Below are positions 2,956 to 50,907 of a stretch of 64,000 nt of DNA, in pieces. The notes beneath the pieces were generated by a model. It was given only the letters and a program-made list of their open reading frames with translations, made no database searches and was not told where the DNA came from. Source of the DNA: Setoptus koraiensis (taxonomy: Eukaryota > Animalia > Arthropoda); assembly GCA_048013815.1 (NCBI GenBank), contig CM106586.1:14694001-14758000 (forward strand). The letters run 5' to 3'. The translations under genes and the position numbers were made by a program. Positions within the stretch are counted from its first letter, which is position 1, and every line of letters begins with the position of its first letter.

Positions 2956-5900
2956 ACACACTGCGATGATACATTTGTGCGCGCGTTACGTCACGTTGCA
3001 AACATTTGTGCGCCGTTTGGGGCCACATAAACAACAGCCAGACCATTATGACCCCCACATATATCTGCTTATACACATACATATGGTGTGGCCAATGAAC
3101 AATAATCATCATCACTGCGCTCGTTCAATCTATCGCCGGCACGCACTGGCAAGTGTCGCCGGTTAGCTAATATGACCGGTGGCTAATGTCACATCTAGGC
3201 GCTCTACCTCTTCGCTGCCCCCTGCGCCACCCTTCGCTACCTTCCGTGAATACCCTGAACGGCAGTGATTGACCGGTCGGGTATTCACGGCGTTCATCAG
3301 GACGATGTCATGTGGGGCTCGATAATGCGCGTGCGATCGCAAAAACACCACTCTTGACAGCACGACTCGCGATGACACAACTCGCAATGACGCAACTCGC
3401 GACGCGACACTCGCGATAATAGCGCCCATAACGACCTGGCCACACCATTCAATTAGGCCCGACAATGAGGCTTCGACAGGTGCCCACACTGACCACTGGC
3501 AACAGCTGATTTATGGTCAGCTGGTCACTGCTGTCACTTGGTCGCTGTTGGCACTTGGTCGCTGTTGTTGCGACCGACGCGACAACATAGTTGCAGCGCC
3601 AGTAATCATGACGAATAAGCGCAGTTAACTGTCAGTGTGAGACCGTGATAACTTTATAACTTTGTTATTATCTAAACTGGCCACTCAATGCAATTAGAGT
3701 GGCCAGTCACACTTTTGCCGCTGGCTCGCATTTATTTATATATGTGGCCATTTATATCGCATTTGTTGCACCACTGACCACTCACTTGTGAGCGTCTCGC
3801 CGGCCACCAGCTGACCAACTGGGCCAATTGGTGCTGTCCGTGGTGCGCAATAATCTGTTTGTACCGGCCAAATGCCGCTGCATTGTCCGGCTGCCCGCGC
3901 CAGGTATGTCGAGGGTACCCGCTAACAGGTATGGCAGGTACGGCAGGTATAAATGAGAGTATCTGTTGTATCGGTTGTTGTAGCATAGGTGTCGTGTTTG
4001 CAGTTGCCAGCGGGGCTATATATTTATATAAGCGAATGAGCGAATGGCCGTAATCACAACAATCGCTATTATTTTTAGTTGTTAGTGTTGGCAAACTGGT
4101 GCTAGCAGCAAATTAACAGCAGTAGCGCCGCTTGCTGCCAGAAATAGATAATTTAATGTTGGCAGCGGTCGGCCTATACGGCCGCTGCGACCAGGCCAAT
4201 AAAAGGGCTACCCTCCCGGCCTAATGGGTATTATGGCGCTGCTGTTGCCGGTGGTTGCCGGTTGTTGCCGGTCGTCGCCGGTCGTTGGCGGTTGTTGCCG
4301 GTCGTTGGCGGTTGTTGCCGGTCGTTGGCGGTTGTTGGCGGCTGTTGCGCGCTAACGAGGCCGAGCGAGCCAGATACACGCCGGAGATGTTTGCGTGTCG
4401 AGCCGTGTCGTGTGTCGTAAAACACCCAGAACAGTTGTTGTTGTTGCTGTTGCTGCTGTTGTCGCTGTTGTTGTCGCTGTTGTCGTTGTTGTTGCTGGCG
4501 TGGCCAGTTGTTGTCGCTGTTGTTGCTGGCGTGGCCAGTTGTTGTCGCTGTTGTTGCTGGCGTGGCCAGTTGTTGCGGGCGATGACGACGACCAAAGTAC
4601 CGCTAAAATTAGATGGACTTGTTTGCCAGATTAATAATGCCAGCGCCAATAAGTGGCCGCAATCGGCTACAAACTTGCGCGCCCGATAGTGTCAGTTTGG
4701 AATGGTGCCCCCTGTTTGTTGCCCATATAAACACCTCGCGATTTTATGCTTTTAACTTTCGACTTTGTGGCTGCCATTAGCCACTGCGCGCCGGCCACTT
4801 GCTGCCTCTAGCGGCCAGTGCCAACTGCACATAAATCGACATAAATACTACTCTCCTTTTATACGTCTCCATTATATATCTGTATTTATATCTACGCACC
4901 ATGGATATATATACTACTATACTGTACATATATATATACACCGTATATCCATGAGATATCCATGCTAGCCGGACCAGATATAAATACGCCAGACGAGGCA
5001 TTTATTTATCCTGTTTACAACCATTGATCGGCCCTTTATAATCATGTCCGGCCTGATGTCTCTCTTAGGAGTGATGATCGTCATTTAACCGCGCGCCACC
5101 ATTTATAGCCCGGCACTCTAACTATTATAATGTGTTACAATGCTGGCACACAATTTTTTTAGCTCAGGCCCATTATAACCCAGCCACTTGTGCGCTGCCA
5201 AAGCAATAACAAAATGACCCTATGTGTGCTGGCCGAGCTTTGCGCGCCCCGTGACCTAGGTGGCGCTCGTTGGTATCTGGTCAACATTGTAAAGTGAGCA
5301 CGTACACCGAGTGCATAATTGTAACCATTAACTGCCAATAGCCAATTTGCCAATTTGCCAATTTGCCGTTTAAAGCCGCACCAACAACCCGAGTTGACCA
5401 ACAAGCCGAGTTGACCAACAACCCAAGTTGATTGAACCAACAGCCGGCCAACAAGCATGCCTAATAACCGGCCCTAATTGGCCTAACTGGCAAACAAGAG
5501 AATTAGTGTTGTTATTATCATTTGGACAATTGGCCAATTGGACAATTAAAAGCGACACAACAATGCTGGTGATTGATTAATCGCCACTGGACTCGCAGAG
5601 ATGAAGTGATCACCGTTACTGATGTTAGTTATTGTTTTTGCCATTGTGTGGGCCTTATTGAGTGGCGTCGATTGTGATATTGATGGGGATATCTCATAGT
5701 ATACATTAGATTGTGATAGTGAGCGCCGACCACCCAGCAGCGGTCACTCAAAATCATTTGGGCCAAATGCAAATAGCCAACGGCCGACGGTCAGTGAGTT
5801 GGATTGCCGCTGCGATCTATGGCGACCGTTGGCGACCGTTGGCGACCGTTGGCGACCATTGGCGACAAACAAAGCCAACAACGGCAAGTATGCAGATTAG

Positions 5901-8900
5901 CGTCGGATTAGCGCGACAACAACGGACACAAATTAGGTGGAACACAAGGTGAAAATTGCTCGTGTGAATGATTATGGTTCGAGATAGCCTCGGGTGCTTT
6001 ACCTGGCGCGCTGGTCACTGGATGTCGCACTGGATATAGTGATTTGGGATATAGTATATATTGGATTGTAGTGCGTGCAGCGGCCGGCAGGGCTCACTAT
6101 AATGCATTGATGTCTTGTATAATGTGTCGGCCAGAATTGGCGGTATCATGTCAGTATATTGGCCTCATATTGGCATGTGGTCACGTATCGTGTTGCGCGC
6201 CGAGATGGGGCCAGCGGGAGCAGATTGCGGTCGGCCCCAACCTATAATATGCGTAGAGTACAATATGTGTACTGTATTGTAATGAAACACATGCTCACTA
6301 GCGCCACCCAATAATCGCCGGCCACATCCTGGGGCCCGGCGCAATATTGGCTGGCGCATTATCGGCTGGCGCATTATTGGGTGCATCGAGCGCTGCGTGG
6401 GGTCTAAACAGCCAGCGTTGATTATTTAGCTATTGGCACCCATTGGTGGCGCGCTCGCCTGGTGACAGTGATCACAACTAGCGCGGCCCCGTGATTTGCG
6501 GTCACCTCTCGTGTTTGCAGAGTCGTGCTCGCATTGTCTTGACATGTCAAACAGTCAAACAGTGTCGTTCGGGCGACACCCACTGGTTGTGCGCGGTTGT
6601 CGGTGCGGACGAGCGCGCCCCAAAACCGACTCTGGTTGCAGTTGTGGTTGGCGCTGTTGTTGGCGGTGGCCGCTTGCGGAACCGCCGTGGTCGTTGTTGT
6701 TGTCGCTGTTGCTGCTTCTGTTGTCGTTGTTGTTGTCGTTGCTTCTGTTGTTGTTTTCGCTGCTGTTGTTGTTGTTGTCGTCGTCGGTGTCGTCGCGCCG
6801 GTGGCGCTGCGAGGAGGCGAGCCAGTGAGCGAGTTTGCAAAGTGAGCGAGTCTGCAAAGTGAGCCAGTTTGCAAAGTGAGCCGGTGACTGATGATGATAC
6901 ACGCAATGGGGCCAAAGAGCATTAATCAAATGCTAATCGGCCCCCATCAACAACCAGCGCCGGCATTGTTAAGCAAACCAACAGCACTCCTTGTTACAAC
7001 AATTGTCGCTGGCACAACCGCAACCAACTGCCAACAAATGGTGGCCATTGGTCGCATTGACAAGCGAATCATAACTACATAATCAATTTCGTCCACACGC
7101 ACCAACCGCTAAACCCGGCCCGCCCGTGCTGTTGAGGCCCGATTGTTGGCGGGTCCCGGCAGCACGAGACGCGGCCCGCCATCATTGACTTGATACGGCG
7201 GCGCGGCCGCCGATCGGGCCAACAACAACCAACTAAAAGTCCATCATTAGTGGGCCGGCCTCCCATCCAATCAGCGGCATGTCAGCGCCCGCTAAATCAG
7301 TGCTGCCGGGCTATCAGTGGGTGTCCTCGGTGAGCCCATCTCATTTGCCTATCATCACTCTTGTCGGTGTTCTGCCCGACAGTCGAGTCCGGCCGCTGTT
7401 GCAGCGGACTCGCGGCGCACCCGCAGCGGATTTAAAAGCCACCCATCGGCGGGCCATGTTTTGGCCATGTTTTGCCCGTGTTTTGCCCGTGTTTTGCCCG
7501 TGTTTTGGTCGTGTTTTGGGCATGTTTCAATGGCATTCGGGCCGCGTTTCGCCAGCGTTTCACTTGAATTCGGGCGATATTCCGGTGCGCATTACGGTGG
7601 CAGAATGGCGGTGGCAGCATTACAGTGATAGCATTAGAGCGATACTTTGTGATACTCCGGTGGCCAACAAAGTGGCCAGTATTTAGCCCCAGTATTTAGT
7701 ACGGGCCCCCGAACTGGCCGCCTAAATACTATTTAGTAAATAGTAAATAGTGGCAAATGGGGCCGTCGCGCGATGCCATACACGTATATCGTGTGTATGT
7801 AAATCAATCACCTTGGCGCCATTTATTAATGCGGCTACTTATGACTTGCGGTCGCAACTTGTCGGTTGGTGGCCATAATCCGGCCCGAGTCAGTGGGCCG
7901 CCGCTGGTCGGCCAAAACAACAACTAATGGGATTATTGTGGCCCTTCATTCATCACAATAATCACGGCCACCGCAGCGCCGGTGTCTCACGCGCAGCGCC
8001 ACTCGGCCCGAAACTGCAACAACGACAACTGCAACAACCGCAACAACTGCAGCAGCAACAACCGCGACAACTGCAGCAACAACTATTACAACCACTGCAA
8101 CTGTTGTAACTGGCGCCCGCGAGCGAATCCGTACCGCAACTTGTGCGGTTGCAACTCGCAACTCGCGACGACAACTCGCAACTGTGAGAACGCACGGCGG
8201 CCATTGAGAGCGGATAATCAGAGCAGATAAGCGGTGCGGATAAGCGGAGCCGCGCCACTAAGCACAGCGGATCAGCCAGAGCGGATAATCGGAGCGGATA
8301 AGCATGGCCGGCGGGATAATGGGACAACAGGAGCAAAAAACATGTTCCAGCATGTTGCAACATGCCCCAACTGTGTAATCGCGTAAGTGCGCACAATCCG
8401 CCGGCCGGCCCGTTGTTGCGCCCGTCGCTGGCCATTTGTCGTCAATTGCGGTAATCCGGCGCGTCGTTTGCGGCCCGGGCCCCTGCCGGCCCGCCGCCCT
8501 CGAACCTCGGCAGCGGCCACAACAACAGCAACAGCGACAACAACAACAGCGACAACAACAACAGCGACAACAACAGCGACAACAACAGCGACAACAACAG
8601 CGACCACAACAGAGACGACATGCGCAAGCGGTGGCCGCGCGGCCAAACAAGCGACAAACAAACGGCCGAGCGGCCGCTAATCTCGCCGGCAAATCCAATA
8701 ATGATCCCAATATTGGCTAATATCTCTCGGCCGATATAATGCGCAATTCACCGGCATTCATGCGCCAGCTACCGGCCAACAGAGAGCCGCCGCCAGCTAC
8801 CCGCCGCCAGATACCCGCTGCCTGATAGAAGAGCGAGCTCGCCCGACTGGCGGGCCCCACCGGCCGAGGCTCGCAAGCGGCTGGGGCCACGCCAATGACA

Positions 8901-10937: not shown

Positions 10938-11126
10938 TCCATTCTTCGAATCAGTGAACTCGTTGCTCAATCTGAAGCGCAAATACAAACTGTTATTTCA
11001 GCACGACCCGTGTCTCTGTTCTGATGTTTGCCAACAATGAGCAAGGTACAATTAAATGAGGACGCAAGAAAAATATTGAACGTCATCATCGAAGCAAAAC
11101 AACGACAAAAATACATTAAACTAGAT
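10938..11126 (+). pseudogene. Decayed duplicate of the Rictor 3' end (inverted copy of ~28494-28760)
   Basis: Reads FFESV----NSLLNLKRKYKLLFQHDPCLCSDVCQQ* versus Rictor FFESVEKVENSLLNLKRKYGLLFQHDLCLYSDVCQQL. It has a 12-nt deletion, a TTA>TGA nonsense change, a 61-nt deletion (original 28576-28636, AAT microhomology) and about 20 substitutions. Confidence 0.92.
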
Positions 11127-11360
11127 TGTCATCAATGTTAATATTTACTTATTTTTATTCATTTCATCGCATAAAGAATCAATGCTAATTATACAACAAT
11201 TTTGGGCTTCTTCTTAGACTTCTTTGGTTTGTTAGATCGACTTTTAGTCTTGCAAATGGGACAAATGGGTGCGTTCCGGTGTATCAATTGGTGACAATTC
11301 AAACATGTCTTCATCGGTGGCTGATGATGGCTCATCTGTCTCTGTTGTTGTTGCTGTTGT

Positions 11361-11391
<31 letters not shown>

Positions 11392-11765
11392 GTTGATGTT
11401 GTTGTTGCTGTTGAGTTGCTTGTTGGGCCGCTGCTGCCTGTTGCTGGGACAACACCGGCGTCGCTTGTTGGCCCGGCGCATGTTGAGCCTGCTGATGTGA
11501 TGGCGGTGCTTGTGGTGGTTGCTGATGGTGGTGGTGGTGGTGGTGGTTGTGTTGGTTGTTGCTGTTGAGATTGTGGTTGTTGTGGTGCTGCTGTCTGTGG
11601 TGGTGATGCAGGTGCTGTAATTGCTGTTGTTGATGTAGGTGCTGTTGGTGCAGTAGTTGTTGCTGATGTTGCTGTTGTTGCTGTTCGTGAATTTGTTGTT
11701 GCAATTGTTGATGTTGGACACACATGAGCACGTAGGACAACAAGGCAGGGTCCATCGGGTGCTGT
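10938..11765. repeat. Left arm of an inverted segmental duplication; partner ~27905-28760
   Basis: Direct reverse-complement alignment: 100% over 11154-11353 vs 28267-28466, about 97% in the poly-Q/H middle, about 80-85% in the Rictor tail and in the DPALLSY region. Confidence 0.95.
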
Positions 11766-12184
11766 TGTGATTGTTGTTGTTGTTGCTGTTGTTGTTGTTG
11801 GTGGTGGTGGTGATGGTGCTGCTGCTGATGATGATGATGATGAAGATGATTGAGGGCCAAGTGGCCGGCGCTCAGCACAGATTCGTGCTGGCCGGCCAGA
11901 CCGGCCGACACAGCGTGGTTGTTGTGGTTGGTGTTGTTGTTGTTGGTGGTGAGTAGCGAGGGCGATCTTGTCAGCGACATGAGGGGTGTTGTTGCGGTGA
12001 GCGCCGTTGGCATGAGCTGCTGCGGTGTTGCTGGCTGAGGGGGCGCCACTGTCTTGCCAGAGGTTGCGGTGGTGCATTTGCCCGACAATATTGACTCTAT
12101 TGAGAATGGGTGCTGGCGACGCAGCGGCGGCGACACCGACACCGCGTGCTCGGTGTCGCTTGGTGACAATTTTATGTTTATCAT
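11189..12184 (-). CDS. ZC4H2: ZC4H2-type zinc-finger protein, paralog B (331 aa): eh1 motif, poly-Q/H region, C-terminal C4H2 finger, single exon
   Basis: C-terminus [35 protein letters not shown] matches human ZC4H2 [36 protein letters not shown]. First ATG is at 12184 (the track start at 12307 is TTG). HPFSIESIL is an eh1 motif. AATAAA on the minus strand at 11154-11159. Confidence 0.75.
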
Positions 12185-12206
12185 GTTGACACTGCCAACT
12201 CGTGAT

Positions 12207-12290
12207 GACGACTGGTGACGACTGGTCAAGATTGGTGACGACTGGTGACGACTGGTCAAGATTGGTGACGACTGGTGACGACTGGTGGTG
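12207..12290. repeat. 30-mer tandem built from a gacgactggt subunit, just upstream of paralog B
   Basis: gacgactggtgacgactggtcaagattggt x2 plus a partial copy. Confidence 0.9.
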
Positions 12291-15200
12291 ACGATCGGCG
12301 ATGACAATTGGTGATGGCGACAACTAATTGTAACGAACGACGCTTGTAACTAATGATTGCCGATAATTAACGATAGGGGCCGCTATTGACCACAAGCGGG
12401 CTTGCAAGGGTGTACGAGCTGATGAGTTAATGAGCTTACAAACATATCTCGACTATTTGTATCGACTAACAGTGACGACTGACAACAATAATTAAATATA
12501 CTCGCCACTACTCAACTAAACTCTGCTCATCGCCGCCGTGCGCCAACAAAAGTAACTACACACACACACACTGTAAATAACTAACGCCACCTATACACCT
12601 AACGAGCGCGAGCATGAGCACTGACAAATTGTGTGCCTATATAGTGTGCACAGCGCCGCGCGAGACTATTCAATAGTCACTGGCGCGACACTATCACTGA
12701 TGTCAGTAGCGCTGAGCCACTGAGTGTGTGTGTGTGTGCGTGTGTGTAGTAGCTGTGGCATTTCGTGTGCGTGTGTCGCACAGAAGTCGCTCTCGCGTGT
12801 GCACGCTCAATCGACCCGCTCGCTGGCAGTGCCTGGCAGGCACACTCGACTCAATGCTCACTAACTCAAAATTGAGTTGTGCGCATCATCATCATGTTTA
12901 TCCGCTACCACGCTGGTGCCACTCAATATTCGCGCACATCGTGTTGTTTGTCCGGCTAACACCGGTTTCGTCCGCGAGGCGGCCCCTTTTATTTCCGCTC
13001 GCCGCGCTGGCCGGCTCGCCACGCTGGCCAGCTCGCCACTTTGGCAACTTTAGCGAGTAAAATGTAGCAATTGTGAGCAAAGTGCGCCACAAGCGCTGTA
13101 ATCATGCCGCCTTGTAGCGGCGCCGGCCGAGACAGTGCGGCGCCGCGCCGCTCGCGGACAAAACCGACAACACAGATTGAGCAGGCGGGCCGATTGTACG
13201 CTTGCTTCAGTGGCTCGCCAGAAAAGTGTCCACTTTGGCCGCTCGTCGGCCTATAGCGACACCAATTAGCGACACAGACAGAGCGGCGATATTGTGTTTC
13301 AACGTGCATTGTCGCCGGCGAGCTGATTTGTTGTCGTGACAACGATTTGTTGTTGCGAGAACGATTCGTTGCGACGAGACTATCTGGCTGTGCCATTATC
13401 GCGTCGCACAGCGGCCTGACAGAGGCGCAAGTGTGACTTATGGCGCTCACTGTGCAGCGAGCTGGCCAGCGTAGTTGGCGCAAATGGCGAGCTTGACAAA
13501 TGAATGAATTTTGATATTTGTCACGCTGGCCAGCTTGTGGCCGCACGCCGGAGTCGCCGGAGTCACTGGAGTCACTGGAGTTACGTAAGTCGCGCGCCAG
13601 TATCACTTGGTGGCCACAATTTACTGGCCAAGTGAAGCGGGCGCAGTTGAGCGCTGGCACAGCCAGCGCGCGCACTCTAGGCACGTAGACGCGTGGCGTA
13701 ACGCGTGCGTTGCACGTGCAAACTGCATCCCAGCGGGCAAGCTGTTTCCCCCGGCCGCTGCGAGCACTTGTTTTGCTGACCACAACAACACGCGGCGCTG
13801 CAAAACAAGTGAACTGAACAGAGCGACACTTGAGCCTAAGATAATAGAAGCGCCGCTCGCTGCAACTAATGATGATGCTTTAGTTAGCTGGCCGCTGGTC
13901 ACTGCTCATTGACGGGGCCCGCAAGTCACTGCTGGTCACTCAAGTATAAGTGACCAATGGCCTCTTGCGCCGCTGCCTCACTTATCCGCCTGCGTGCTCG
14001 CCTTGGTGCTCGCTGTTGTGCACAGCATACGGCATGCCGACCGCTTACGCCGTTGCCTGTGCCTGTGCCACATACGGCTAGCCGGATAATCGATTACGCA
14101 ATATGTTTTGCACGCTGGCGCCAGCACACTCATTTGCACGCTAACGCTCACACGTGGCCACTGGCGACAGTGCGTCGAGTGGGCGCGACAGTGTGCACAA
14201 AATATCATCGCTCATGGTGACATAACGCTCACGGTTACGCAACCGCTGACCGGCACTGTCCGAACTGCGACGCTGCTCACAGTCACAGTTGCGAGTCTGA
14301 ACAAACTGACGGTTGCAAGTCTGAACAGACTGACGGTCTGAAGCAAGACTGACAGTGGTGACGTAACAGCGATAGCCGCATCGCTAATGTCACCGCTCGC
14401 CACAAAGTCACCTGCTGACCAGCTCGAGCCAGCGTGTGCGCTGTGCCAATCTGATGAATTGTCGGCACAGCGGTCGGGCCAGACCCGCTGTCGCCGTTGT
14501 CGCCGCTGTTGTTGTTGCTGATGTTGTTGTTGCTGTCGCTGTCGCTGTTGTCGCGTTGGACGGAACTGGCTCGCCAGGTAACGCGCCAGGTAACGCGCCA
14601 GGCAGCCGGTGCTGCCGTTTACGTTGTTTATAACTAATCAAATGGAGGGATGCGCCTGTGCCCACTCTCTCATGTCGGCTTATGTCAGCTCGTCTCGGCT
14701 TGTCTCGACCTGTGACAGCCATTTGACAGTTTATAGGTGCGCTTTTTACAACTGACTTTACTCGCCACTCACAACTTGTCAGCCCTCGGAGATCGTCGCC
14801 AGTCTGGCTGCCGAGCTCGTCTCATCTGTGCCCCTGTTGCCGTGTTATTATAATGGCCGGCGACGCCCGAACACTCTGGCAACGAGCACTCCGGCAAGAC
14901 AGACTGGTCGCCAGCCATAGGCGCTGACAGCAATAAGAGTAATAAGAGTGAGTTAATAATTGGCAAAAGCTCCAACTGGACTGACCATTATTTATTATTA
15001 TCACTGCAACTGGGCGACTGTGCATTTACACTTTGCCAACTGCTCTACCTGAGCCCTTACCTGCGTCTGTATCTCTATCTACGTCAGACTCTGATCATCA
15101 GACTCTGATCGTCAGACTCTGATCATCAGAGTGTCCGAGCGTCTGACGAGTATTGAGTATCTGAGAGTATCTGAGAGTATCTGAGAGCATCTGTGAGTAC

Positions 15201-17437: not shown

Positions 17438-18452
17438 TCCGGCCTGCGCAATCGCGGCACAGGTGAGCGGTCAGTTGCGCTCGCGCTGACCTCTGCCGTG
17501 CTCATGACGCTCATGACGCTAATGGCGCTAATGAGAGCCGCTGAGCGCGAGACTAGACAAACAAAGCGACAGCTATAATCTTTGTCAACACGCACACGTC
17601 TCATTTGTAAGCCAGATAATCGCATCAGTGCGCCGGCGTGCGCGTTGCACAAACGGATAAACGGCGCTCATTAAACGGATTGATTAAAGTCAATCCGCGC
17701 TTACGTGCCTTACGAGCCCAACAACTCGCCTAAGCTGTGCCCGCACATATTCGGCGCGCCCGCGCATATTCCGCCGGGCCGGCGCATTACGCTCGTTAGC
17801 TGCTCCGGAGCTCGCCGGCGCTGCTGCAAACCGGCGAGCTTCGGGCCGGCCAGCTCCGGGCCGGCCAGCTCACAACACGGACAGTCGGACTCCGCGGTCG
17901 AGCTCCGACGGAACCTCCGAGAGAATATTCACGAGAGAATATTTACGAGAGAATATTTACGAGACAAGCAAGCTCGAGAAAAACGCACGCGACGGTGTCG
18001 GCCGAGCGTCTCTGGCGAGCGCGGCGCGCGCTAATCCGCGACCGGCGGGTCAAGTGGTCAAGTGGCTGTAGCGCAAACAAACTCGCCAGACACCGGCGAT
18101 ACGCGCATTATCTGCAGTATCATCTATGTGTCTGCGGCCACTATCTGCGTGCATCTACAAGTGTCCGCATTAATCAGTGTGCGCAACTGTGCGCGAGTAT
18201 CAGTGGCCGCAACTGTCCGCGGGTATCAGTGACTGCAATTATCCGCATCAATCGGCGAGCATCCGCATTTATCTATGGGCACATCTCATGTTTATCTCGT
18301 GTATGAGCGAGTACGTGCGCGCATCTGGCCCCGGCGCGCACAGATTGACCGTGGGATTGTTTATGCTCGCGCCGCATCGGCGCGATTCAATTATTTAATT
18401 ATGCGAGCACTAATTATTTGCAGCGGCCACTCACTCGCCGATAGTGACCACT

Positions 18453-18555
18453 GGCCAGTTATTCGGCCAGTCATTTGGCCAGTCATTTGGCCAGTTATTC
18501 GGCCAGTTATTCGGCCAGTCATTTGGCCAGTTATTTGGCCAGTTATTCGACCAGT
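18453..18555. repeat. Tandem 12-mer ggccagtYattY, 8 copies
   Basis: Direct reading. Confidence 0.95.
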
Positions 18556-21500
18556 GGTCGCTGTCGGCCGGCCAGATATTTGGCCAATGGTCACTAGTGG
18601 CCAAAGTGCGCGCTGCCAGATACGCCAAATATAATATGATGCGACTGATCGCCACTGCACAGTGCAATATCGATCGATTTGCGGCCATTTGCGCCTGCTT
18701 GCGCCGGTTTGCGCCGGTCTGCGCCGACTGGGCACCTGAGCCACGCTCAATCTATCGCCTAATTAAAATCTCATGAGCGCCACGGGCCGACGGACCCGCC
18801 GACACACACACACACACGCACACACACTGACACACAAGCGGCCGACACGCTCAAGCTGCGCGGCCCGCGAATCAATTGCAATCCAATCAAATATAATCGC
18901 CTCGTCAAATTATCACCTCGAGCAGCCACAGCTCCAGCGAGCCTCCTCTATCCGCGCCGATCTGCGGCCGTCCGCGCCGTCTGCGGCCGTCCGGCGCTGC
19001 GCGCCATATAGCCACAGGGGCCGCGGCGGCGTATCCACTGGCCCAGGGCTACGTGCCCGACGGCCGGGTATCGCCGGCACTGCGACAATGTCAATTGTGG
19101 TGCCAGCGACAATGCCGGCGATAACGCCGGCGATAATGCCAGTGATAATGACAGCGCCAACTAGAAACAACACTAATTAGAAACACACACACACACGCAC
19201 AATCGAGTGTTAATTGTATCAATCATCGAGCCAGCGGCAGCGACTCGGGCAAAGCCGCACGAAGCCAGAGAGAGCCAGAGAGAGCGGCCTCCAGCGGGCC
19301 GGCCCGTTAGCAGCGCCGGGCAGCGCCCATATTGTCGCCAACATGATTGATTGGCCATGCTTGAGATGATAATTAATTGCTGGCGATGCGGCGCTGTCGT
19401 TGTTGTTGGCGTCGTGGTCGTGGTCGTCGTTGTCGTGGTTGTTGGCAAACAACATTAGTTCAGCGACAACAGCGACAACTTCCACTCGCTTGTACGTGCT
19501 GCCCGTTTGTGCCCCCTGGTCTGTTGTACGGCTGCACGTGCTGGTGCCCGAGCTGGTCGCTGTCAAACGGAGCACATAATGATAATTTAAATATAATTTG
19601 CTCAGACAAACGAGCGGCCGGGCCGCGCCCATCGCCTCAATTAATGCGTGCTCATGCACAGCGTGCCTCTTTGTTGCTCGCCGTTTGTTGGCCCCCTTGT
19701 GCCGAGCGTGCCCAGGGCGCCCATTGTGCCCACTGTGCCCGTTGTGCCCACTGTGCCGCCGCCAGGTGATGAGCCGTCCAATTGATGCTAATTGATCGAT
19801 CAATACCGCTGATTGGATGGCCGTCGCGAACAGTCCGACACGCGGCCGACAATCCCGCCAGCGAGCGGGCGAGATTGTTGCCAGCGAGCAGCCGACAATG
19901 TTGCCAGAGAGAGACGAATAAATATATATGAAGAATGGAACAAAAGTGACCCAAAACCGGCCACTGTCGAGCGAGATAATTAGCAGGCACAGCGAATATG
20001 TTAATTATTAGCATCATAATGCCGATGCCAACTGCAAACCGGCAACCGGCCGAAGCGAGAGCGCCCCTGGCGGACATGCCGTAAATGGGTGGTTGGTCAC
20101 TCTTGACTGGCGAGCGCGACCGTCACCGGCGATCGGCGCAAAATATCGCCAACTGTCATCCGATTTGCGACATACCAACAGTGACACCGTCACTGTCGGC
20201 TTGCCACTGCCGCGCACCCGTCATAGCGACTCATGGTATGAATTGTGGTCGTCGCTGCGGTTGTCGCTGACGCTGTTGTTGTTGCTATTGCTGTTGTTGT
20301 GGTTGTCGGCCAGTGTGGCCAGTGTGGCCATTGTGCGCCGGTGGCCACTTGGAATGCCGGCGCGCACGAAATTCCAATCGCCGGCCATTCCGACGGCCGG
20401 CCCAGGTGACCCCGGCACCGAAAGCGCAAACTGCAAACCGCAACAACAGCAACAATTTTAATTCTTTAGCCACGTACGTGCGTGCACGTGTATGCGGCTC
20501 ATGGCATCAATTGATCATTTAGACTGGCCGCAAATATCCGTTCGGCATATTTGCGGCGCTGACAAATATGCCGCTAGCGCGAGCTATTATGGCCATTATC
20601 GGGCTCACTGGCTAACTTGCTCATTTGGCTTATTGTTTGGCTTGTTGTTTGGCTTGTTGTTTGGCCCGCACGGGCCACGGAAGCACCGGCTCGCCGGCCC
20701 GCTGGGTGCCCGGCCGCCGACAACCGTCAAACGCTGAATCAGTCGACAAGTCGCACGAGCTGAATCGGCGAATATCCAATCGGCCGAATATCCAATCGGC
20801 CGAATATCCAATCAGCTGAATATCAGTTGGCGCGGGGATTAGCGCGCTTCGAACGGGCCGGTCGGCGCTGGATTTTGTCCCGTTTTATCCCGTTTCGTTT
20901 CGTTTCATTTCATTTTATTATCATCACCCAGTGACAACTCACTCCGCGGCCACCGCTCACCGCCGTGCGCCTGTGTTCGGCCACTACCTGTGCTGACCAC
21001 TCTGACAGCACAGACACTCTGACAGAGTCCGGCTAAAAATAACCACGTGCTTGCACGTTGACCAGTGCTGCCAATGTCAACAGCGCACAAGATAATACGA
21101 TAATACCACGCCAACAGCCACAACTGGGCGAGGCCTCATCAAAGGGCCGCTCCAGCAGTGCGCCATTGGTGCATAGGTGCACTCGCGGCGGCAACGCGCA
21201 CAGATTTAATGCAGATTTAATCCGCCGCTATCAACAAGTGACCGGCAACACGCCAGCGAGAGCCGGCGCTCACTTTGCTCACTTTGGCCCCTCATTGTGC
21301 ACACTGCGCCAAACAGCCGCGTTGCCAGCGGGCCGTTTGCCTGCCCGAGCGGCTCCACTTCCGCCGCCGCCGCCGCCGCAGCCGCATCTGAAATCTGTGC
21401 GCATTATTATTATTTCGAGTGTCGATAATCGACACTCTCACAATTGTTAATCGCATGGCGCGACTGCAGCGGTCGCCCTGTAACCTAGCGGCAACGGCAG

Positions 21501-27789: not shown

Positions 27790-28431
27790 ATGACCAACTC
27801 CGACAAGTTGTCCTTCTCCATTGAGAACATATTGTACAATAAGACATCCACGTCGCCTATATGCCAACAACAACTGCAGCAGCAGCAGCAACAACAACAA
27901 CAAAGGCACCCGATGCAATCAGTGGACCCCGCCTTGCTGTCCTATATGATTATGTGTGTCCAGCATCAGCAACTGCAACAACAAATTCACGAACAGCAAC
28001 AACAGCAACATCAGCAACAACTATTGCACCAACAGCACCTACATCAACAACAGCAATTACAGCACCTGCATCACCACCACAGACAGCAGCATCACAACAA
28101 CCACAATCTCAACACAAACAACAATCACCACCACCACCACCACCATCAGCAACCACCACAAGCACCGCCATCACATCAGCAGGCTCAACATGCGCCAGGC
28201 CAACAAGCGACACCGGTGTTGTCCCAGCAACAGGCGGCAGCGGCCCAACAAGCGGCTCAACAGCAACAACAACAACAGAGACAGATGAGCCATCATCAGC
28301 CACCGATGAAGACATGTTTGAATTGTCACCAATTGATACACCGGAACGCACCCATTTGTCCCATTTGCAAGACTAAAAGTCGATCTAACAAACCAAAGAA
28401 GTCTAAGAAGAAGCCCAAAATTGTTGTATAA
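27790..28431 (+). CDS. ZC4H2: ZC4H2-type zinc-finger protein, paralog A (213 aa): N-terminal eh1 motif, poly-Q/H region, C4H2 finger, single exon
   Basis: Same C4H2 finger as paralog B; LSFSIENIL eh1 motif at residues 7-15; in-frame TAA at 27775-27777 upstream of the ATG; AATAAA at 28461-28466. Confidence 0.85.
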
Positions 28432-28493
28432 TTAGCATTGATTCTTTATGCGATGAAATGAATAAATATAAGTGTATTCATATTGATAACAAT

Positions 28494-31400
28494 CTAATTT
28501 AATATATTTTTGTTGTTGTTTTTTTTCGATGATGATGATCCCATGTTCAATATCTTTCTTACGTCCTCATTTAATGGGTCGAATGTTATATCAAGGAACA
28601 ATTCTTGCAAGAACCTTCTTGATAGTAGAGGGAAATTGTAAGTTGCTAATTGTTGGCAAACATCAGAATATAGACACAGGTCGTGCTGAAATAACAGTCC
28701 ATATTTGCGCTTCAGATTGAGCAATGAGTTCTCAACCTTTTCCACTGATTCGAAGAAGGACGAACTAAAATTGCCTGTCACCAAAAAGTATGATAGACGT
28801 AAAACCTCACGTCGCACTTGTGATAACTGAGAAGGTGTAAAGTTTGCTCCTAACATACTTATAGGCTCGTTAGCTAATTTCGAGGTCACAGGCGTATTAG
28901 CCGAGGGTGTACCTTCATGATGTGATTGAATGGGAACATTATTGTTGTCAGCTATTGCTTTAGATGTGGTTGTTGGAGCATTCACAGAAATAGGTCCACT
29001 CGCACCACATAAACTGCCTATAATAGAGTCTCTATCACTTTCGGATCCTGGCACTTCCTTGATATTTGATGAGATCTTTCTTGTTGTTGCCAATCTAGAC
29101 GATGATGGTGCCGAAACGAATGGTGTTGAAGTTGATATTGGTATTTGTAGCGATGGTGGCATATCTGACACGTTATTATTATTGTTTGGCAAATTGCAAC
29201 AAAAAAGACAATTAGTTCTCTTATGCGTATCATTGTAGGTGCAACTAGAAACTGTCATATTGCTGTTTAGATGTGAATTCATTATGGCTGATCCTCTCAT
29301 GTTGTTTGTAGCCGATGTCGATTGACCTGAGGCGACAGTGGACGACGACAAGTAGTTATCCGATGTAAGACCAGCGACAAGGTTAAGCTCTGGACCATTA
29401 GTGTTGTTGTGTGCAACAGATTCGGAACGATTAGTTGAATCTTGGATGTTTAGATCTTTGTCATCAGGCTTAACTAGAACCTGATCTAAATTAAGGGGCA
29501 AGGCTAGCCTTTCTTTTTGCATTGCGATCCAATTCTTTGTTTTCAAATGTTCGGCTCCTTCCTCGGTTGAAGCTAATAAGCCCAGAGCGTTGAAGGCTGT
29601 GCCTCTTAAAGACAAAACTTTCGAATATCTTGCAATATCGACAATTACAGATATAATCTCGACCTCGTCTAACAACTGGTAACCTCCTTCACTAGATCCC
29701 ACGTGTCCAATTACCCATAAGGCTGCTTTTAGTTTCAGAACATTCAATTCGCTAGTTTCCAGGTCGCTTGGAGGAGATTTTATGATGTTGTAAAAGGGCT
29801 CCAATAAATTCCTATTCACCAATATTTGTACACCGTCGGCATGTTGAGCTAACTGGCCGTACAAGTGACATGGTAAGTCAGAATTCTTCGTCAAAGGATT
29901 TATTTTGTCGATTCTTCTTCCATACCGGCCATCCTCACTTTTCTGATGGTAAGTCAATGAGTTGTTCAATACATCTTCCACTATCTTGACGTATCTATAA
30001 TTGTATATTTTTATCCACTTGTTTAATTCATAATCGAACTCAGTGATTCTTTCGAGGAGTTGTTCGCCAGTTGATTGAATGGAACCGTTCACACGATAGG
30101 TTGGCGATAGATCACTAGCATTATCAATTGAATTTTGCACTGATGAGGATGTCATATGGTCAAGAACTAGAGGACTAGAATTAAATTTATGAGGAGTTTC
30201 CATCAAATACTTCAAACCCGTTATAGTTGAGGCAAATCTACACAACAGAATCACACCACTGTCACCACTTGACCTGAGAACCTGTATGATGTCCGTTTTA
30301 ATAAACTTGCAACGTAATGATGAGCTATTATCATCTTGCAACTTAGCTGAATGTTGTTGTTTTTGATTTTTTGATGTTGTACCATCGAGTATGGGGGATT
30401 CTGTCGTACTTATAGGTGTAATGATATGCCTTAGTGCAATCAAACCTTCAAGATTCTCATTGAGATCACAAGCCTCGTCCAGTATTTCGGCAGCCGAATG
30501 ATGCACAATCCTACTTGAATTATTCAACTGTCTAACCAATAATTCTATACACCAAGTGGAAAAATCTTTGACTTTTGCTCTCAATAAGACACGGATGAAA
30601 TTTGTTGCATAGATACGAACATTTTCCTCGGGGTGTTCAAAAAGAAACTTTTCCAACAGTTTACGCGACCCGTTAAATTCTTTGGTATAGTCGAAACATG
30701 ATATTATGAGCCTAACGTGCACCTCAGCTGGCGAAGATGGATTCTGGATAGATAATTGTATCAAGTTGTTTATTAGACTAATGATACCTGTCTTGATTAA
30801 TAGTTGATAGCCTTTTGTTGTGCTAGATAACCGGCCAATGAAAAGGAAATAACTGCTACTAAGAGTGCTGATCAATTTTGACGAGCTTGTCATGTCACAA
30901 GTAGGCAAATTTTGACCATCTACCAGAGACATGGATTGTGCTATATCATTCAATAGTTCCTCTAAGAAATCTGATGTTTTTGAATCTTCGCATTCAATAA
31001 GAAAATCAATCAAATGACACCCGGTTTCACAATATTGACGTGCTCTTTCATTGTTGATATCTACTGTTGAGTATTGATTTGAGGAGGGCTTGAAAAAGTG
31101 TATTAGACGCTTTATGAAGGTTTTGTGCAATTGAGTTGAGAGTGTCTTGAGAGACTCGCTAGGACGATTTAATGAACAACCAATAACATACCAATCCCAT
31201 TCTTGCCAATCTTGCAACATAGATTGTTGGGATTGATGGTGCGGAGCTGGTAGTTGCTGTTGTGGTTGCACATTGCCGGTAAACTCTTGATCTGCATTGG
31301 ATAGATTCATCAATTTAATAGTAGCTTGGAAGGATTTATCTCCTTTATCTGGGCGAATGTACTGCTGGAATTTCATTTTGCCAATAGCAAATTTCGAATA

Positions 31401-33066
31401 AAGAGTAGGAAAATGGCCTCCTTGCGGAGAGGTTGGGGTATTCTTTGTTGGTGTCTTAGCGGTGCCTTGACTGGACGGAGTAGAACTATTAGATGATGCA
31501 TAATTGGCTGATGATGGTTGATTATTTAAGGCTGACGTAGATGGTTGGTAGTTTGGATAGAGAGGCAAACTAGGTGGCCTAATGCTAGGATGCATAATAG
31601 ATGATGATACCGATGATAATGTGGATGTGGAAGATGTGGATGACATAGATGATGATCGAGTTGATGTGCTCTTAAGATGATTGCTACTCTTTGCTTTTGG
31701 ACTGGGGTTGCAAAATTGCAAGATCTGACTCAAAAATAGACTACATTTTGGCAATGATTCGGATGATTTTTTCAAACCATGTATCCTATCAAGATTCGTA
31801 AGGGCTGCATTAGCTAGATCACGGTGTTCCTCTGATTTGGAAGTTGCTGCGGCTATTAAAGTTGGTAATGATAAATATTTACTTATACAATCGGGCGGTA
31901 GATATTTACTTGATAGTTGAAGCAACTGTCCAAGTAATATTGTCGCTCTAAAAGAATTTTCCTGGCTAGACGAACTTACAATAACAACGCTCAAAGCATT
32001 AACTATATCACAATGAAAGAGAGCTAACAATAGTAAGGCCATGTAGTTAGTAACCAAACTCATACGACTCCTGGTTCGTACAGGGGATAGGATACATTTC
32101 GCCTCATCAACAACAAATGCATCATGTATTTTCCAAGAATCTCTTGATATTTGATTGATTTCCAATGATTTAAGACCAACTTCAAAATTATTGGTCCAAT
32201 CTGGTAACGGTAGTGACAGTAACTCTGAAACCAAATCAATCAATCTACGCCTAATTTCATTGTAAGGCAGGTAGAGCATACTAATCAAAGATTCTAGACA
32301 GTTTTTTGAAACGGTATCCTTTGGTGGTGTCTGATCGTTGAGATAAACTAAACCAGGCCATGAACGCAATATTGAGATCAGTGTATTCTTTGCCGTAGTA
32401 AATCTATTTTCTGGATTCTTATTCTCCGATGAATCACTGTAAGCTATCCTTCTATCTGCCCTTTGGTGTTTGTTCATATGCGGATGCCTAGGTTTTTCTA
32501 TTTTCTCATCAAATAGAGGTGCTGTGTAATGAGAGTCAGTGAATGGCGCAGCAAATATTTGCATGTCCAAATCGCCCCGTATCAGTTGCCTGTATTTCGG
32601 CCAGTTAAGCATGTACAATAATGTCGATACGAGGCTCTCTGATATACTGTGAGGTTGATTATATGGAGCGAGGGCCGCATGTAATATTATGTTAAAGGCA
32701 CGATTTCTGGTATCTATTGTTGCAGCTTCAGGATTCAAAATAGCTAGCTCGGCCAACAGAGCCCAGCACACCCTAGTAAGATTATCCTTATGGGGTATGC
32801 CATCTTGAGCTATCGCGATCATTGATCGTGTAAATGCCCTAGGAAATAAATGTGGTGTGATAGATAGTATCTTTCGAACTAATCTGAGTGCTTGATGGCG
32901 CTCCTCATCGTTACCCAATACAACATCAATAGATCTAACAATTAATAAATGTAAATTAATCTTGAGGAGAGCTTGAACGGCTTGCTCATCTTTCAATAAA
33001 TATCTTATTGCACGTAGACCGGCTGCTCTGACCTCATATGTTTCGTGGAATAGGGCCGTCCTTAAA
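28494..33066 (-). CDS. Rictor: Rictor (TORC2 subunit), main exon 2; whole protein about 1578 aa
   Basis: LRTALFHETYEVRAAGLRAIRYLL matches human CLRLALLNEAKEVRAAGLRALRYLI. Also LKAALWVIGHVGSS, SLRGTAFNALGLLA, and C-terminal Zn ligands HKRTNCLFC and DLCLYSDV...RRFLQELF. Acceptor ...catatcatcag at 33067-33069, phase 2. Confidence 0.97.
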
Positions 33067-46208: not shown

Positions 46209-47164
46209 GGCATAAAGGCATAGAGGCATAGAGGCATAGAGGCAGCTCGCAAGACACTGACAAAAACTAAAGTCTAGACAAGGCAAGTTGCTGTTGTTTG
46301 TAGTCACTTTGTAACTCACTCGCTCGCCATTTATTGGCCCACTGTCACTGTGGCTACAGGCTATCGAGTGACGCAATAGTTGCATCACAAGCGAGCTGCA
46401 GCACATAATAAACAATCTGTGTGTGTGTAGGGTATGGATCACAATTGTGATTGCTGCTGCTGTTGCTGCTGCTGTTGGCTGTGTCGGCCGCGATCGGCAG
46501 TCGGCGCTGAGCCGCTGGACACAGGCGACATTGCTGACAATTGAATGGCCGGCGCCAGTTACGAGATGATCACAATGATTTGATTATCTGTGAACATGTG
46601 TGTTGACATCGCAGTTTGCTGTCATTGTGTGCGCAGCATCGTCGACAAAATGACATAACAACACCGACACCAACAACAACAACACTGTGCACGACGACGA
46701 CAACAACAACAACAACACCGTGGACAACGACGACAACAAAAAGAAGCTCGATTCGCTGTTGTGCTCGCTTGCTTTTCTCTCAGTGCGTGTGTGTGTGCTC
46801 GCCTGACAGTGTCAGCCTGACAGTGTCGGCCTGACAGTGTCAGCCTGACACACCTGACACAAGTCAGCTGACTTGTGTCAGTTGAGTCAGGCGTGTGAGA
46901 CACATTTATTGAAGAGTGTTGGCTAGTTGTGAGAACTGCGCTCACAACGATCAGCTGGCCGTGTCAGCTGTTGCAACAGCTCGATGCTCAATTTGACAGA
47001 ACTCTGACTGACTCACAACTGACAAACAATCGGCTGACTGTCGCTCGCCGCTAACCAAACTTCAACTGGCCACGCCGGCACCGGCTACCGACCGGCGGAT
47101 CTCGTACGCCAACCGACAGCGACCATGTCGATGTGCAACCACTGCCCGTCGGCGGCCGATATCC

Positions 47165-47270
47165 ACATATCGACATATCGACATATCGACATATCGACAT
47201 ATCGACATATCGACATATCGACAAATGCACATATCGACAAATGCACATGTCGACATGCCGACATGTCGAG
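47165..47270. repeat. Tandem 8-mer acatatcg, 7 perfect copies then degenerate and palindromic copies
   Basis: Direct reading. Confidence 0.95.
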
Positions 47271-49127
47271 ATGAGTCGCCGGAACAATATCATCGACAGC
47301 GCACACATGTTCACATACGAATAAATCAATCGCAAGTTGCATCACACACACACACACACACACGCACTTGCTAGAAAACACACACACACACACACACACG
47401 GCAACAGGTGTCTTACGACGGCGACGGTGCGCACAACTGTGACAGGGCCATCAATTGCGGCTAGCCAGCCAGTCAGCTGATCGATGCAGCTCACTGGCAG
47501 AAGTGGATCAATGCAAACATAACGCTTGACCAATTGACAAACAATGCGCTGTTGCGTCTGTTGCGTCATCTCTCTCACTCTGGCCATTGCGTCATCTCTC
47601 TCACTCTGGCCATTGGGTCTCTCCTGCGGCCGTTGCGTAATGGGCCAGCAGTTCGTGTGCAAATGCCAACACTAATCTTGTCACACACTAATCTTGTGTC
47701 TGTATCTTGTGTCTAATGTGACATATGGCTGCGCTGCAATGACGCAACGCGCCGCTAGCCGTCAGTTGGTCAGTTGGTCAGTTGCGTGCGGCCGAGACTG
47801 ATTGAATTGATCGACTAAATCGCGCTGTCAGAGGCGAATGGCGCGGCCAGCAGCTCGCAGGCTCAGAAGCGAATCGGACGGCTAAACGGCACGAATACGG
47901 TCGGCGAGCAGTGGACATTGTTCGCGCCGAGTGATCGCGGCCGAATTGCGCCGGCTCGAGCGGCTTCGGCCGGATCGGAGCAACGCGGCGCTGCTGGCCT
48001 GAGAGCGTTTACGCGGCGCTGGCATGAGAGCGCTTACGCGAGGCCAGAAAAAAGTAAATTGCTGTCCAGGTAACTGAGCCAATTCGATTATGTGTTTCGC
48101 TTTTGTTTGGCGGCTGTTGCGGCGCCCACTGGCCTATTGCGCAACTGTTACTCAATGGCATCGAGTGGCCGCAGCATCGAGTGGCCGCAGCATCGAGTGG
48201 CCGCAGCATCGAGTGGCCATAACATCGAGTTGCTATAACATCGAGTGGCGATAGCGCTGCGCTTATTGGATTGAGCTGGCCACTCGGTGGCATTGTGATA
48301 GCTGCTCGGGCCACCCTGGCGCTACAACGGCCAACAGGTAACAGGTCATTTTTTGCCGATGAGCAGTGGTCATGGCCGCGTTGCGCCATGTTCAGTCCTA
48401 ACTAACAAGTGGTTGGCGAGCAACTAACAAGTGATTGGCGAGCAACAGGTGAGCTAGCGAGTGACCAACAATGCGTCTAGACAGTGCTGGCAACTGGCGA
48501 GTCGCCATTCACAGTGAGCAACAAGTGTCTGTTTTGTTGTGAGCACGCAAACTTTTGCTTGCACCATTAACCCATCTACTGCTACCACTTTGCTGCTTGA
48601 CTATCCCTGATAAATCCGCCACTAATCTGCTCCGCTGGCCAATTGCTGTCGCTGTTGCGGCCGCAACAACGACAGCAACAACAACGACAGCAACAGCGAC
48701 AGCAACAACAACGACAGCGACGAGCGCCTGCTGCATGCAATGCGAATCCGGCCGGCGGCTTGGTGATGCGCCGACGATAAACAGTGGACAGGTATTGTGA
48801 TTGCTGCGTCATCAATCAGCATCATTAGAGAGCGACAGAGCAAAGCAACCAACAGAGATTTTTCAGAGAATTTTCGCAACGGCCGACAGCGACGTTCGGT
48901 CGGTGGTCTGGCGGCCAACACTGTTATTATTGTTGTTATCATCATTATTGTTATTATTATCGGTGTTGGTGTTATGCAACAGCAGCGCCGAATAATGGCC
49001 GGCGGGCGACGCGCACTGGGCCGGCCTTTGGCGTGGCGAGGGCCACGAAGCGCTCGATCAGCGCGCCAGTCACTGGAAAGGCCGCGTTAGAAAGGCGCAA
49101 TTTCTTCGGGCCAGTTTCTCCGTTTCC

Positions 49128-49246
49128 AATGTTTCGCCGCTTCGAATGTTTCGCCGCTTCGAATGTTTCGCCGCTTCGAATGTTTCGCCGCTTCGAATGT
49201 TTCGCCGCTTCGAATGTTTCGCCGCTTCGAATGTTTCGCCGCTTCG
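49128..49246. repeat. Tandem 17-mer aatgtttcgccgcttcg, 7 perfect copies
   Basis: Direct reading; no spacers between units. Confidence 0.97.
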
Positions 49247-50907
49247 AAATGTTTCTCCGTTTTGAAACGTTTCTCCGGCTCGAGCTCGAATGTGCCCTCG
49301 AAGCCGCATTTCGAACGCACTCCGACGGCTCGTCGAGCGCTCGCCGAACGCACCGCTCGCCTCGGTGTGCCGCCGCTGCCGATGCGCCGTCTGCCTGCTG
49401 CGGACGACGGCATGAGCATGAAAAGAAAATAAAAATAAAGTCCAACATAAAGAAGAGCTGAGAATTGCGTGCTCGAGCCGGCGCATTCGCTCAGGTGACA
49501 CCGGCGGCCGGCGAAGCCATTGAGGCGTGCTCACCGGTTGCGCATCTGCGGTGCGCGCGTCTGCTCGGTCGATGCTCGCCGCATCCCGGCCGGCGCAAGC
49601 CGAACAATGGGAGAGGCGTCGGCCAGAATGGGAGAAATTTTTATTTTTTGTTTATTATTTTTGCCCGCTCGTTTCCCTCGGCCGGCTGTCGCCCGAACGC
49701 AGCCGCACTGCGCATATATTCGAGCCGATTCGAGCCGATTCGAGCCGAATTGCACAGATTCGCGGGCCTAGTGCCGCCAGCGAACACACATGACGATGAC
49801 ACACGAACGGTGTCTAGCAGCCATGATATATCACGTATCAGGGTCACTTGGTCAGTTGTGCCGCGTCCATTATGACAGCACAGCGATCAGCTGTGCTGTG
49901 CCCATTGTGACAGCTATGACGTCGCAACAGCTGAGCGCCGACGCTCGTGAGCCAGGCTGCTGCACGCCACCGGCGGCCACAACAAAACACAGTCAACAGG
50001 TGAGGGCTTTCGCTCTCACCTGTTGTCGACGAGACACTGTAAATAAATGTATAAATAAACTCGTGACGCAACTCAACCTGTCTGGCTCACGCCGAGACCC
50101 ATAGAGCACTGGACGGCGACTCCGTCAGCTGACTGGTCACAATGGGCAACACAAAGGGCTCGCCAGGGCATATCTAGGTGAACAAGTGCAAGTTTGCATG
50201 CAAATGTTGCCCATGAATGAGGTCTTCATTGCCAATGTAACGCATAATCATCGCTGCCAATTGAATTGAATGTCTTCTTCACGCCGGCGTTCGCTGTCGC
50301 TGTCGCCGGCGTTCGCTGTCGCCGGCGTTCGCTGTCAATGGCGTTCGCTGTCGCCGGGCCAAGCTGGCAAGCTCGCCGCGGCCGTGAAAAGCCATGAAAA
50401 CAATCATTACCAGTGTCCCTGTTGGCGGCGCACAATGGCTAACGAGCCGCCGGCTCGATATCGAGCCCGTTAGACGCATACGCAAAAAATGTGTTTGTTT
50501 GCTTGCTCGCTTGTTTGCACAATGCGCACACATGCCATTACGCAACAGCATTATGATTTGACGTTATGCAACATCATTATGCAACTTTGCGCTGGCTGTC
50601 ATCATTGTGCAACGTTGGTCGGCCTCGCCAGCCGACCAGCCGCCATTGTCCAGACTCGCGACCATTGTGCCGCCAGACAGCAAAGTTGGCCAGCGCGCGG
50701 GTGGCTTCGCATGACACAGTGGCCAGTTGAGCCACTCCGATATTATGCAACATAATATTATATGTTGCGTAATATATCTCGCTATTTATAAATATGGTTG
50801 CAGCAACTTAATCACACAGCCAACGCTGGCCACTGGTCACTCGACCTTGGCCAGCGCTGGCGCTTTTTTAAGAGTAAAAAGTGACACTTGAGCTGGACAC
50901 TTCAAAC

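Follow-up and report, generated by a model that had tools for sequence, protein, structure and literature searches.

Within the stretch of the Setoptus koraiensis genome analyzed here (64,000 nt; hereafter, the window), two genes encoding proteins of the same zinc-finger family lie 16.9 kb apart in inverted orientation and share a segment of 200 nt in which not a single position differs and one edge of which coincides with an AATAAA hexamer. This raises the question of how the segment came to be shared. An earlier note had proposed repeated, 3'-anchored conversion templated by mRNA or cDNA, with arm-to-arm conversion at the DNA level being named as the alternative. Were the former reading true, the stop at the poly(A) signal would be a footprint of the reverse transcriptase-mediated recombination thought to strip introns from eriophyoid mites, and the locus would provide rare, direct evidence of RNA-templated recombination in the germ line of an animal, as well as a way into the origin of intron-poor mite genomes. 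The evidence considered below instead suggests that the patch is most probably the product of ordinary interlocus DNA-to-DNA gene conversion between the inverted paralogs.

The first of the two genes, paralog A (11192-12184, reverse strand), is predicted to encode a 331-residue protein, reading from a putative start codon, that contains an eh1-like FSIESIL motif (12086-12106), a poly-Q/H stretch and a C-terminal zf-C4H2 finger (PF10146, 74.2 bits). Paralog B (27790-28428, forward strand; 213 residues) presents a similar arrangement, comprising an eh1-like FSIENIL motif (27814-27834), poly-Q/H and a C-terminal zf-C4H2 finger (78.6 bits), such that both copies score above the Pfam gathering threshold of 34.5 bits. 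In each case, the match spans only positions 104-240 of the profile. Accordingly, both copies resemble ZC4H2 proteins in the finger and the region that precedes it, yet profile positions 1-103, corresponding to the N-terminal coiled-coil, are unmatched, with the eh1-like FSIExIL motif and a long poly-Q/H stretch being found instead. Paralog A also contains some 100 additional residues between eh1 and poly-Q. Both genes are uninterrupted (i.e., intronless) open reading frames across the region of homology and both are under purifying selection. Genome-wide, these are the only two zf-C4H2 loci in the 48.7-Mb, two-contig assembly. A third copy serving as donor was considered and rejected on these grounds, the remaining DNA matches corresponding to CAA/CAG repeats. 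In a word search of a protein collection with the finger region, the nearest proteins were ZC4H2 of flatworms and a tardigrade, sharing 65-75% identity in the finger, while no eriophyoid orthologue was found by that search.

Examination of the shared segment confirmed its literal description in the earlier note, namely, perfect identity across the finger and 35 nt of 3' flank through AATAAA. Nucleotides 11154-11353 (arm A, gene on the reverse strand) are the exact reverse complement of 28267-28466 (arm B, forward strand), with 200 of 200 positions matching and 0 differences, and the same inverted pair was listed by a repeat finder. In a gapped alignment, 11147-11353 and 28267-28473 are identical at 206 of 207 positions. 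The tract includes the last 54 codons of both genes, which encode the finger (CLNCH...CPICK), the TAA stop codon (11189-11191 in arm A; 28429-28431 in arm B) and 35 nt of 3' flank, with the AATAAA hexamer at its 3' edge (11154-11159, reverse strand, in arm A; 28461-28466, forward strand, in arm B) representing a candidate poly(A) signal. Approximately 132 of the 200 sites are non-synonymous, while some 66 are effectively neutral (30 synonymous sites and the 35 nt of 3' flank). Silent and non-coding positions were also homogenized, as 0 of the 30 synonymous and 0 of the 35 flanking sites differ. Beyond AATAAA, the first base is mismatched, six matches follow and a 2-nt indel is then encountered; as such, 0 differences in 35 non-coding nt within the tract contrast with 5 differences in 30 nt, together with the 2-nt indel, immediately outside. 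At the 5' edge of the tract lies a 51-nt CAA/CAG (poly-Q) length difference, revealed by gapped alignments and present only in arm A (11354-11404, reverse strand).

Going 5' from the tract, raw identity falls through values of 100, 96, 94 and 81%, while at the hexamer it drops from 100 to 85-90%. Raw identity, however, mixes coding and non-coding positions, and silent sites were counted per segment by the Nei-Gojobori procedure. In arm B coordinates, silent differences amount to 3.5 at 5.2 sites (0.68) in 27877-27913, 7 at 10.3 sites (0.68) in 27923-27975, the segment encoding DPALLSY, 2 at 20.7 sites (0.10) in 27976-28113, 2 at 14.3 sites (0.14) in 28121-28196, 3 at 16 sites (0.19) in 28197-28266 and 0 at 30.3 sites in the coding part of the perfect tract. 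Across the aligned 3' flank, 22 of 203 neutral positions differ (0.11; 23 of 210 by a site-wise count). This profile is one of three steps and not a gradient. The oldest recognizable layer, termed T0 (arm B 27864-27975, forward strand; arm A 11702-11801), is 81-83% identical, with silent divergence of about 0.68. The coding part of the second layer, T1 (arm B 27976-28266, forward strand; arm A 11405-11701), is 97% identical, with 7 differences at 51 silent sites (0.14) and a dN of about 0.004. The perfect tract itself comprises the youngest layer, T2. The step at about position 27975 is sharp (7 of 10 silent sites as compared with 7 of 51; Fisher p=0.0007), while within the middle zone silent divergence shows no rise toward the 5' end, albeit on tiny counts (0.19, 0.14 and 0.10 going 5'). 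The identity values in the earlier note thus call for some correction, the middle being 94-96% identical and the DPALLSY zone about 83%, with only eh1 common at the protein level further upstream, and the steady decay that these were taken to describe does not hold.

The position of T1 relative to the hexamer bears directly on the nature of the template. The two arms can be aligned for approximately 290 nt beyond AATAAA, to position 10942 in arm A and 28757 in arm B, at about 89% identity (stretches of 61, 30, 97 and 15 nt being 85, 90, 90 and 100% identical, respectively, with indels of 2, 8, 61 and 12 nt). Thus, while the base that follows the hexamer differs, as had been noted, the 80-85% identity previously given for this region understates the homology, which is clear and reaches 85-90% over some 200 aligned nt. 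In arm B, this 3'-flanking part of T1 (28467-28757, forward strand; 89% identity to 10942-11153 of arm A) consists of a 27-nt spacer, followed on the opposite strand by the stop codon and last 87 codons of Rictor, a gene with an open frame of 1500 codons (28494-32996, reverse strand; Pfam RICTOR_N, RICTOR_M and RICTOR_V) that is convergent with paralog B. In arm A, the corresponding spacer and Rictor tail (10942-11153, forward strand) persist as a decayed relic containing a premature stop codon and deletions of 12, 61 and 8 nt that break the frame. The distal piece of the Rictor tail alone was detected in a genome search with an E value of 7.7e-30. Past positions 10942 in arm A and 28757 in arm B, and at the other end past 11801 in arm A and 27864 in arm B, a search for further homology returned nothing above shuffled controls.

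Neutral divergence is statistically indistinguishable on the two sides of the hexamer, with 7 of 51 silent sites differing in the T1 coding part and 22 of 203 sites in the 3' flank (Fisher p=0.62). The higher raw identity of the 97% zone reflects purifying selection (dN of about 0.004), and the case illustrates how comparing raw percent identity between a coding and a non-coding side (97% as opposed to 89%) can give the false impression of a gradient. The coding middle and the 3' flank belong to one and the same older layer, formed at the DNA level and extending across the poly(A) hexamer. An mRNA encoding the zinc-finger protein would not normally carry DNA from the tail of Rictor, such that the arms share homologous DNA beyond the transcript. 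Equal neutral divergence on either side of AATAAA, together with the Rictor relic, thus indicates that the older layer crossed the transcript end and was DNA-templated. An origin of arm A by retrocopying of a long Rictor transcript was also entertained and rejected, given that the far end lacks an A-run and that paralog A retains its own eh1-bearing 5' half.

Whether T2 is more than a chance stretch within T1 was addressed by placing the 30 observed neutral differences at random across the combined T1 and T2 zone, weighted by neutral weight. T2 contains 0 differences at about 66 neutral sites, where some 7 would be expected, as compared with 30 differences at about 262 neighboring neutral sites. 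The probability of a difference-free window of this weight is 0.0008 if the window is specified in advance and 0.018 in a scan. The case for T2 as a real event is, therefore, reasonable but not overwhelming. Homology on both sides of T2 is present but more diverged (94-96% on the 5' side, 81-83% further 5' and 85-90% on the 3' side), which argues against T2 simply reflecting a recent duplication. At the 5' edge, the 51-nt CAA/CAG heterology may have stopped heteroduplex extension or may have arisen later by slippage. At the 3' edge, T2 meets an A/T-rich spacer, with several poly(A)-like hexamers distributed over the two strands. The earlier note had the identity stopping exactly at the poly(A) signal. 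The visible edge does coincide with AATAAA, but exactness is an over-reading, since the true end of the tract is only bounded, falling anywhere from the last position at which the copies had differed beforehand to the first difference still present, with an uncertainty of roughly 10-20 nt upstream of 28466 at a divergence of about 0.11-0.17. Nor does the hexamer alone define a transcript end. AATAAA or ATTAAA was found within 200 nt of the stop codon in only 14 of 32 long open reading frames sampled in the genome, and AATAAA was accordingly rejected as a reliable marker of 3' ends. In animals, cleavage typically takes place 10-30 nt past AAUAAA. A cDNA complete at its 3' end should extend to the cleavage site and hence have erased the differences at 28467-28488; these differences were retained, with identity ending at or before the hexamer. 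No poly(A) remnant or A-run was found at the 3' edge of the tract.

Eight other pairs of nearby paralogs in the same genome, a small and non-random sample, were aligned, their perfect tracts were placed relative to open reading frames and the genes were checked against Pfam. These tracts are 52-949 nt long and are set in diverged backgrounds. In an inverted pair encoding an XRN-type exonuclease, 650 nt are identical, beginning 20 nt upstream of the ATG and continuing into the 5' coding region, with near-identity extending about 165-185 nt further upstream. The head-to-head RanBP1-like and PAP2_C-like genes share 301 nt (80 nt upstream of the ATG and 221 nt of coding sequence), while the inverted mTERF and ribosomal L13 genes share 200 nt (90 nt upstream and 110 nt coding). 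Internal tracts were found in an inverted EGFR pair (118, 155, 138 and 949 nt, the longest ending some 610 nt before the stop codon), in a direct nuclear-receptor (zf-C4) pair (465 nt) and in an inverted pair of genes encoding proteins of about 1500 residues without a Pfam match (72 and 86 nt). A tandem CtBP-like pair presents a mosaic of 100%, 87-94%, 100% and 80-89% identity, in which the 3'-most tract extends 24 nt past the stop codon, is followed by a 4-nt indel and 28 identical nt, and has no AATAAA at its edge. An inverted SelK pair showed nothing more than weak, short runs of 52 and 60 nt. In sum, three of the eight pairs are 5'-anchored, with tracts starting 20-90 nt upstream of the ATG, three are internal, one is a mosaic and one shows only weak, short runs. 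The expectation that conversion tracts across the genome end at transcript 3' ends is not borne out in this small, non-random sample, in which 3' anchoring was not seen. Nearby duplicates in this genome evidently undergo frequent conversion at the DNA level, and the locus considered here, together with the eight pairs, suggests frequent short-range conversion in a compact genome.

As a separate observation, the RanBP1-like/PAP2_C-like pair (L019:4398-4698 and 5938-6238) and the mTERF/ribosomal L13 pair (L020:2786-2985 and 6794-6993) each share an identical 5' leader and N-terminal codons within a head-to-head inverted repeat (301 and 200 nt, respectively), and in both cases the 5' module is common to genes that are not paralogous.

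What these results mean for a transcript-derived template depends on the layer considered. For repeated, 3'-anchored conversion via mRNA or cDNA, as originally proposed, the outcome is negative, given that the older layer spans AATAAA at equal neutral divergence and runs some 290 nt past it, that the layers are nested, that silent divergence does not rise in the 5' direction, that a poly(A) remnant was not detected and that the eight other pairs are not 3'-anchored. A narrower version holds that T2 alone was templated by reverse-transcribed mRNA, or by RNA directly, from the sister paralog, with the transcript end setting the 3' bound and 5' truncation occurring in the poly-Q region. T2 does lie wholly inside the presumed transcript and reaches into the 3' flank as far as AATAAA, with 5 differences and an indel in the 30 nt that follow, and a source of reverse transcriptase is at hand, with at least 58 RVT_1 matches in the genome, many in long open frames and many reverse transcriptases intact. 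Such a source is necessary under this reading, yet does not discriminate between the models. In the related tomato russet mite, greater retention of 5' introns was described as "potentially a consequence" of reverse transcriptase-mediated intron loss, with an alternative also being offered (PMC7738191). The claim that such recombination is the favored model for 3'-biased intron loss in that mite is thus fair in direction but worded somewhat more strongly than the source. As both genes are intronless, cDNA and DNA templates would leave the same product. Moreover, identity stops at or before the hexamer and not at a cleavage site further downstream, no A-run remains, the true end of T2 may be located as much as some 20 nt upstream of a hexamer that is itself only a candidate poly(A) site, the older layer demonstrates that DNA-level exchange operates at this locus, and tracts sampled elsewhere are 5'-anchored or internal. 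In its likeness to reverse transcriptase-mediated intron loss, the locus offers a youngest tract that occupies the 3' portion of a gene lacking introns and terminates in its 3' flank, in an intron-poor mite genome with reverse transcriptase genes. Unlike such events, no intron was removed, no poly(A) trace is seen, the older layer enters a neighboring gene, the layers are nested and share no 3' anchor, and the tracts sampled elsewhere in the genome lie at 5' ends or within genes. A transcript-derived template for T2 is hence considered to be very unlikely.

Two further readings dispense with a recent exchange altogether. In the first, the two copies truly differ within the 200 nt and were homogenized by consensus building or short-read polishing, short identical paralogous segments being precisely the places at which true differences may be overwritten by mis-mapped short reads. 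However, an assembly of 48.7 Mb in two contigs suggests that long reads spanned each arm along with its unique flanks, adjacent stretches diverged by 4-5% were left intact, and the perfect tracts in other pairs, ranging from 52 to 949 nt, have sharp and irregular edges. Such an artefact would be very unlikely. In the second, T2 is simply a stretch of T1 that by chance contains no differences, aided by strong constraint on the zinc finger. That non-synonymous sites make up about 132 of the 200, that the finger is 65-75% identical to its flatworm and tardigrade counterparts and that the scan probability is only 0.018 all speak for this reading, but about 7 neutral differences were expected and none was seen, and silent (0 of 30) and non-coding (0 of 35) sites are equally clean, as compared with 5 of 30 in the adjacent stretch. 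Chance coupled with constraint is the least likely of the readings weighed here.

DNA-to-DNA conversion, by contrast, accommodates both layers. As read from a single assembly, the nested layers and the neutral-site tests support at least two rounds of conversion upon an old inverted duplication. The earlier note is, therefore, supported in positing more than one round of conversion between the paralogs, and the arm-to-arm exchange which it had offered as an alternative is the better reading, as the older layer crosses AATAAA into the Rictor relic. The history proposed would begin with an old duplication, of which T0 would be the remnant, with silent sites in the 5' portion now near saturation and only eh1 surviving further upstream. 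T1 would correspond to a DNA-level event of about 730-780 nt, from approximately 27976 to 28757, running from locus B to locus A. This direction is suggested by the Rictor tail, which is native at B and broken at A, and which likewise points to a DNA template. The event would have carried not only the gene's 3' half but also the intergenic spacer and the final 87 codons of the convergent Rictor, with neutral divergence now standing at about 0.11-0.14. T2 would be a recent patch inside T1, no longer than 200 nt, that left the two copies without a single difference across the zinc finger and 35 nt of 3' flank. With T2 nested in T1, the two layers do not share a common 3' anchor. Mechanistically, homologous repair between the arms, i.e., ectopic (non-allelic) conversion, is envisaged, with the edges of T2 presumably reflecting interruptions in homology, namely, the 51-nt CAA/CAG difference at the 5' side and the already diverged, indel-bearing spacer at the 3' side. 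A pure DNA model can explain the coincidence of the T2 edge with AATAAA only as just that, a coincidence, in a spacer dense in A/T-rich hexamers.

That adjacent inverted paralogs undergo interlocus conversion has been amply documented, the outcome being identical open reading frame cores with diverged flanks, and mosaics in such inverted pairs arise from several events or from later mutations (PMC3966223). The present locus resembles the known cases, such as the hsp16 modules and hsp70 pairs of C. elegans, Drosophila duplicates and the arms of Y-chromosome palindromes, in presenting a short, fully identical tract, silent sites included, within older and diverged homology. The arms are likewise close, inverted and on one chromosome, several layers or a mosaic are seen, and divergence is higher in the flanks than in the coding core (PMC3966223). 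Nothing essential differs, with the relic of a convergent gene, the edge at a poly-Q microsatellite and the short arms (about 860 nt) being local oddities. As such, the locus represents a tidy, layered case of a known kind of event, ordinary gene conversion at the DNA level. It follows that dates derived from the divergence of these paralogs, or of the Rictor relic, would record the history of conversion and not the age of the duplication.

Several additional features of the region were noted. The stop codons of paralog B (forward strand) and Rictor (reverse strand) are 62 nt apart (28429-28496), and the only poly(A)-like hexamers downstream of the Rictor stop codon are AATACA at 28478 and CATAAA at 28450 (reverse strand), both of which lie within the 3' flank of paralog B. 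Given these positions, the transcripts of paralog B and Rictor probably overlap tail-to-tail. By way of the identical tract, the Rictor 3' UTR would also be complementary to paralog A mRNA. Across the Rictor relic and spacer (10942-11153 vs. 28467-28757), arm A contains G or C where arm B contains A or T at 16 sites, with the reverse being seen at 5, while the GC content of the surroundings is 0.53-0.57 at arm A and 0.39-0.48 at arm B. Finally, CAA/CAG-type trinucleotide runs occur all across the window, and minisatellites with short units are found in GC-rich stretches at 12193-12302, 18441-18572, 47143-47278, 49097-49265 and 4228-4357, with units including a 10-mer resembling TGGTGACGAC, the 12-mer GGCCAGTTATTC, the 8-mer ATATCGAC, the 17-mer GTTTCGCCGCTTCGAAT and the 10-mer CCGGTNGTTG.
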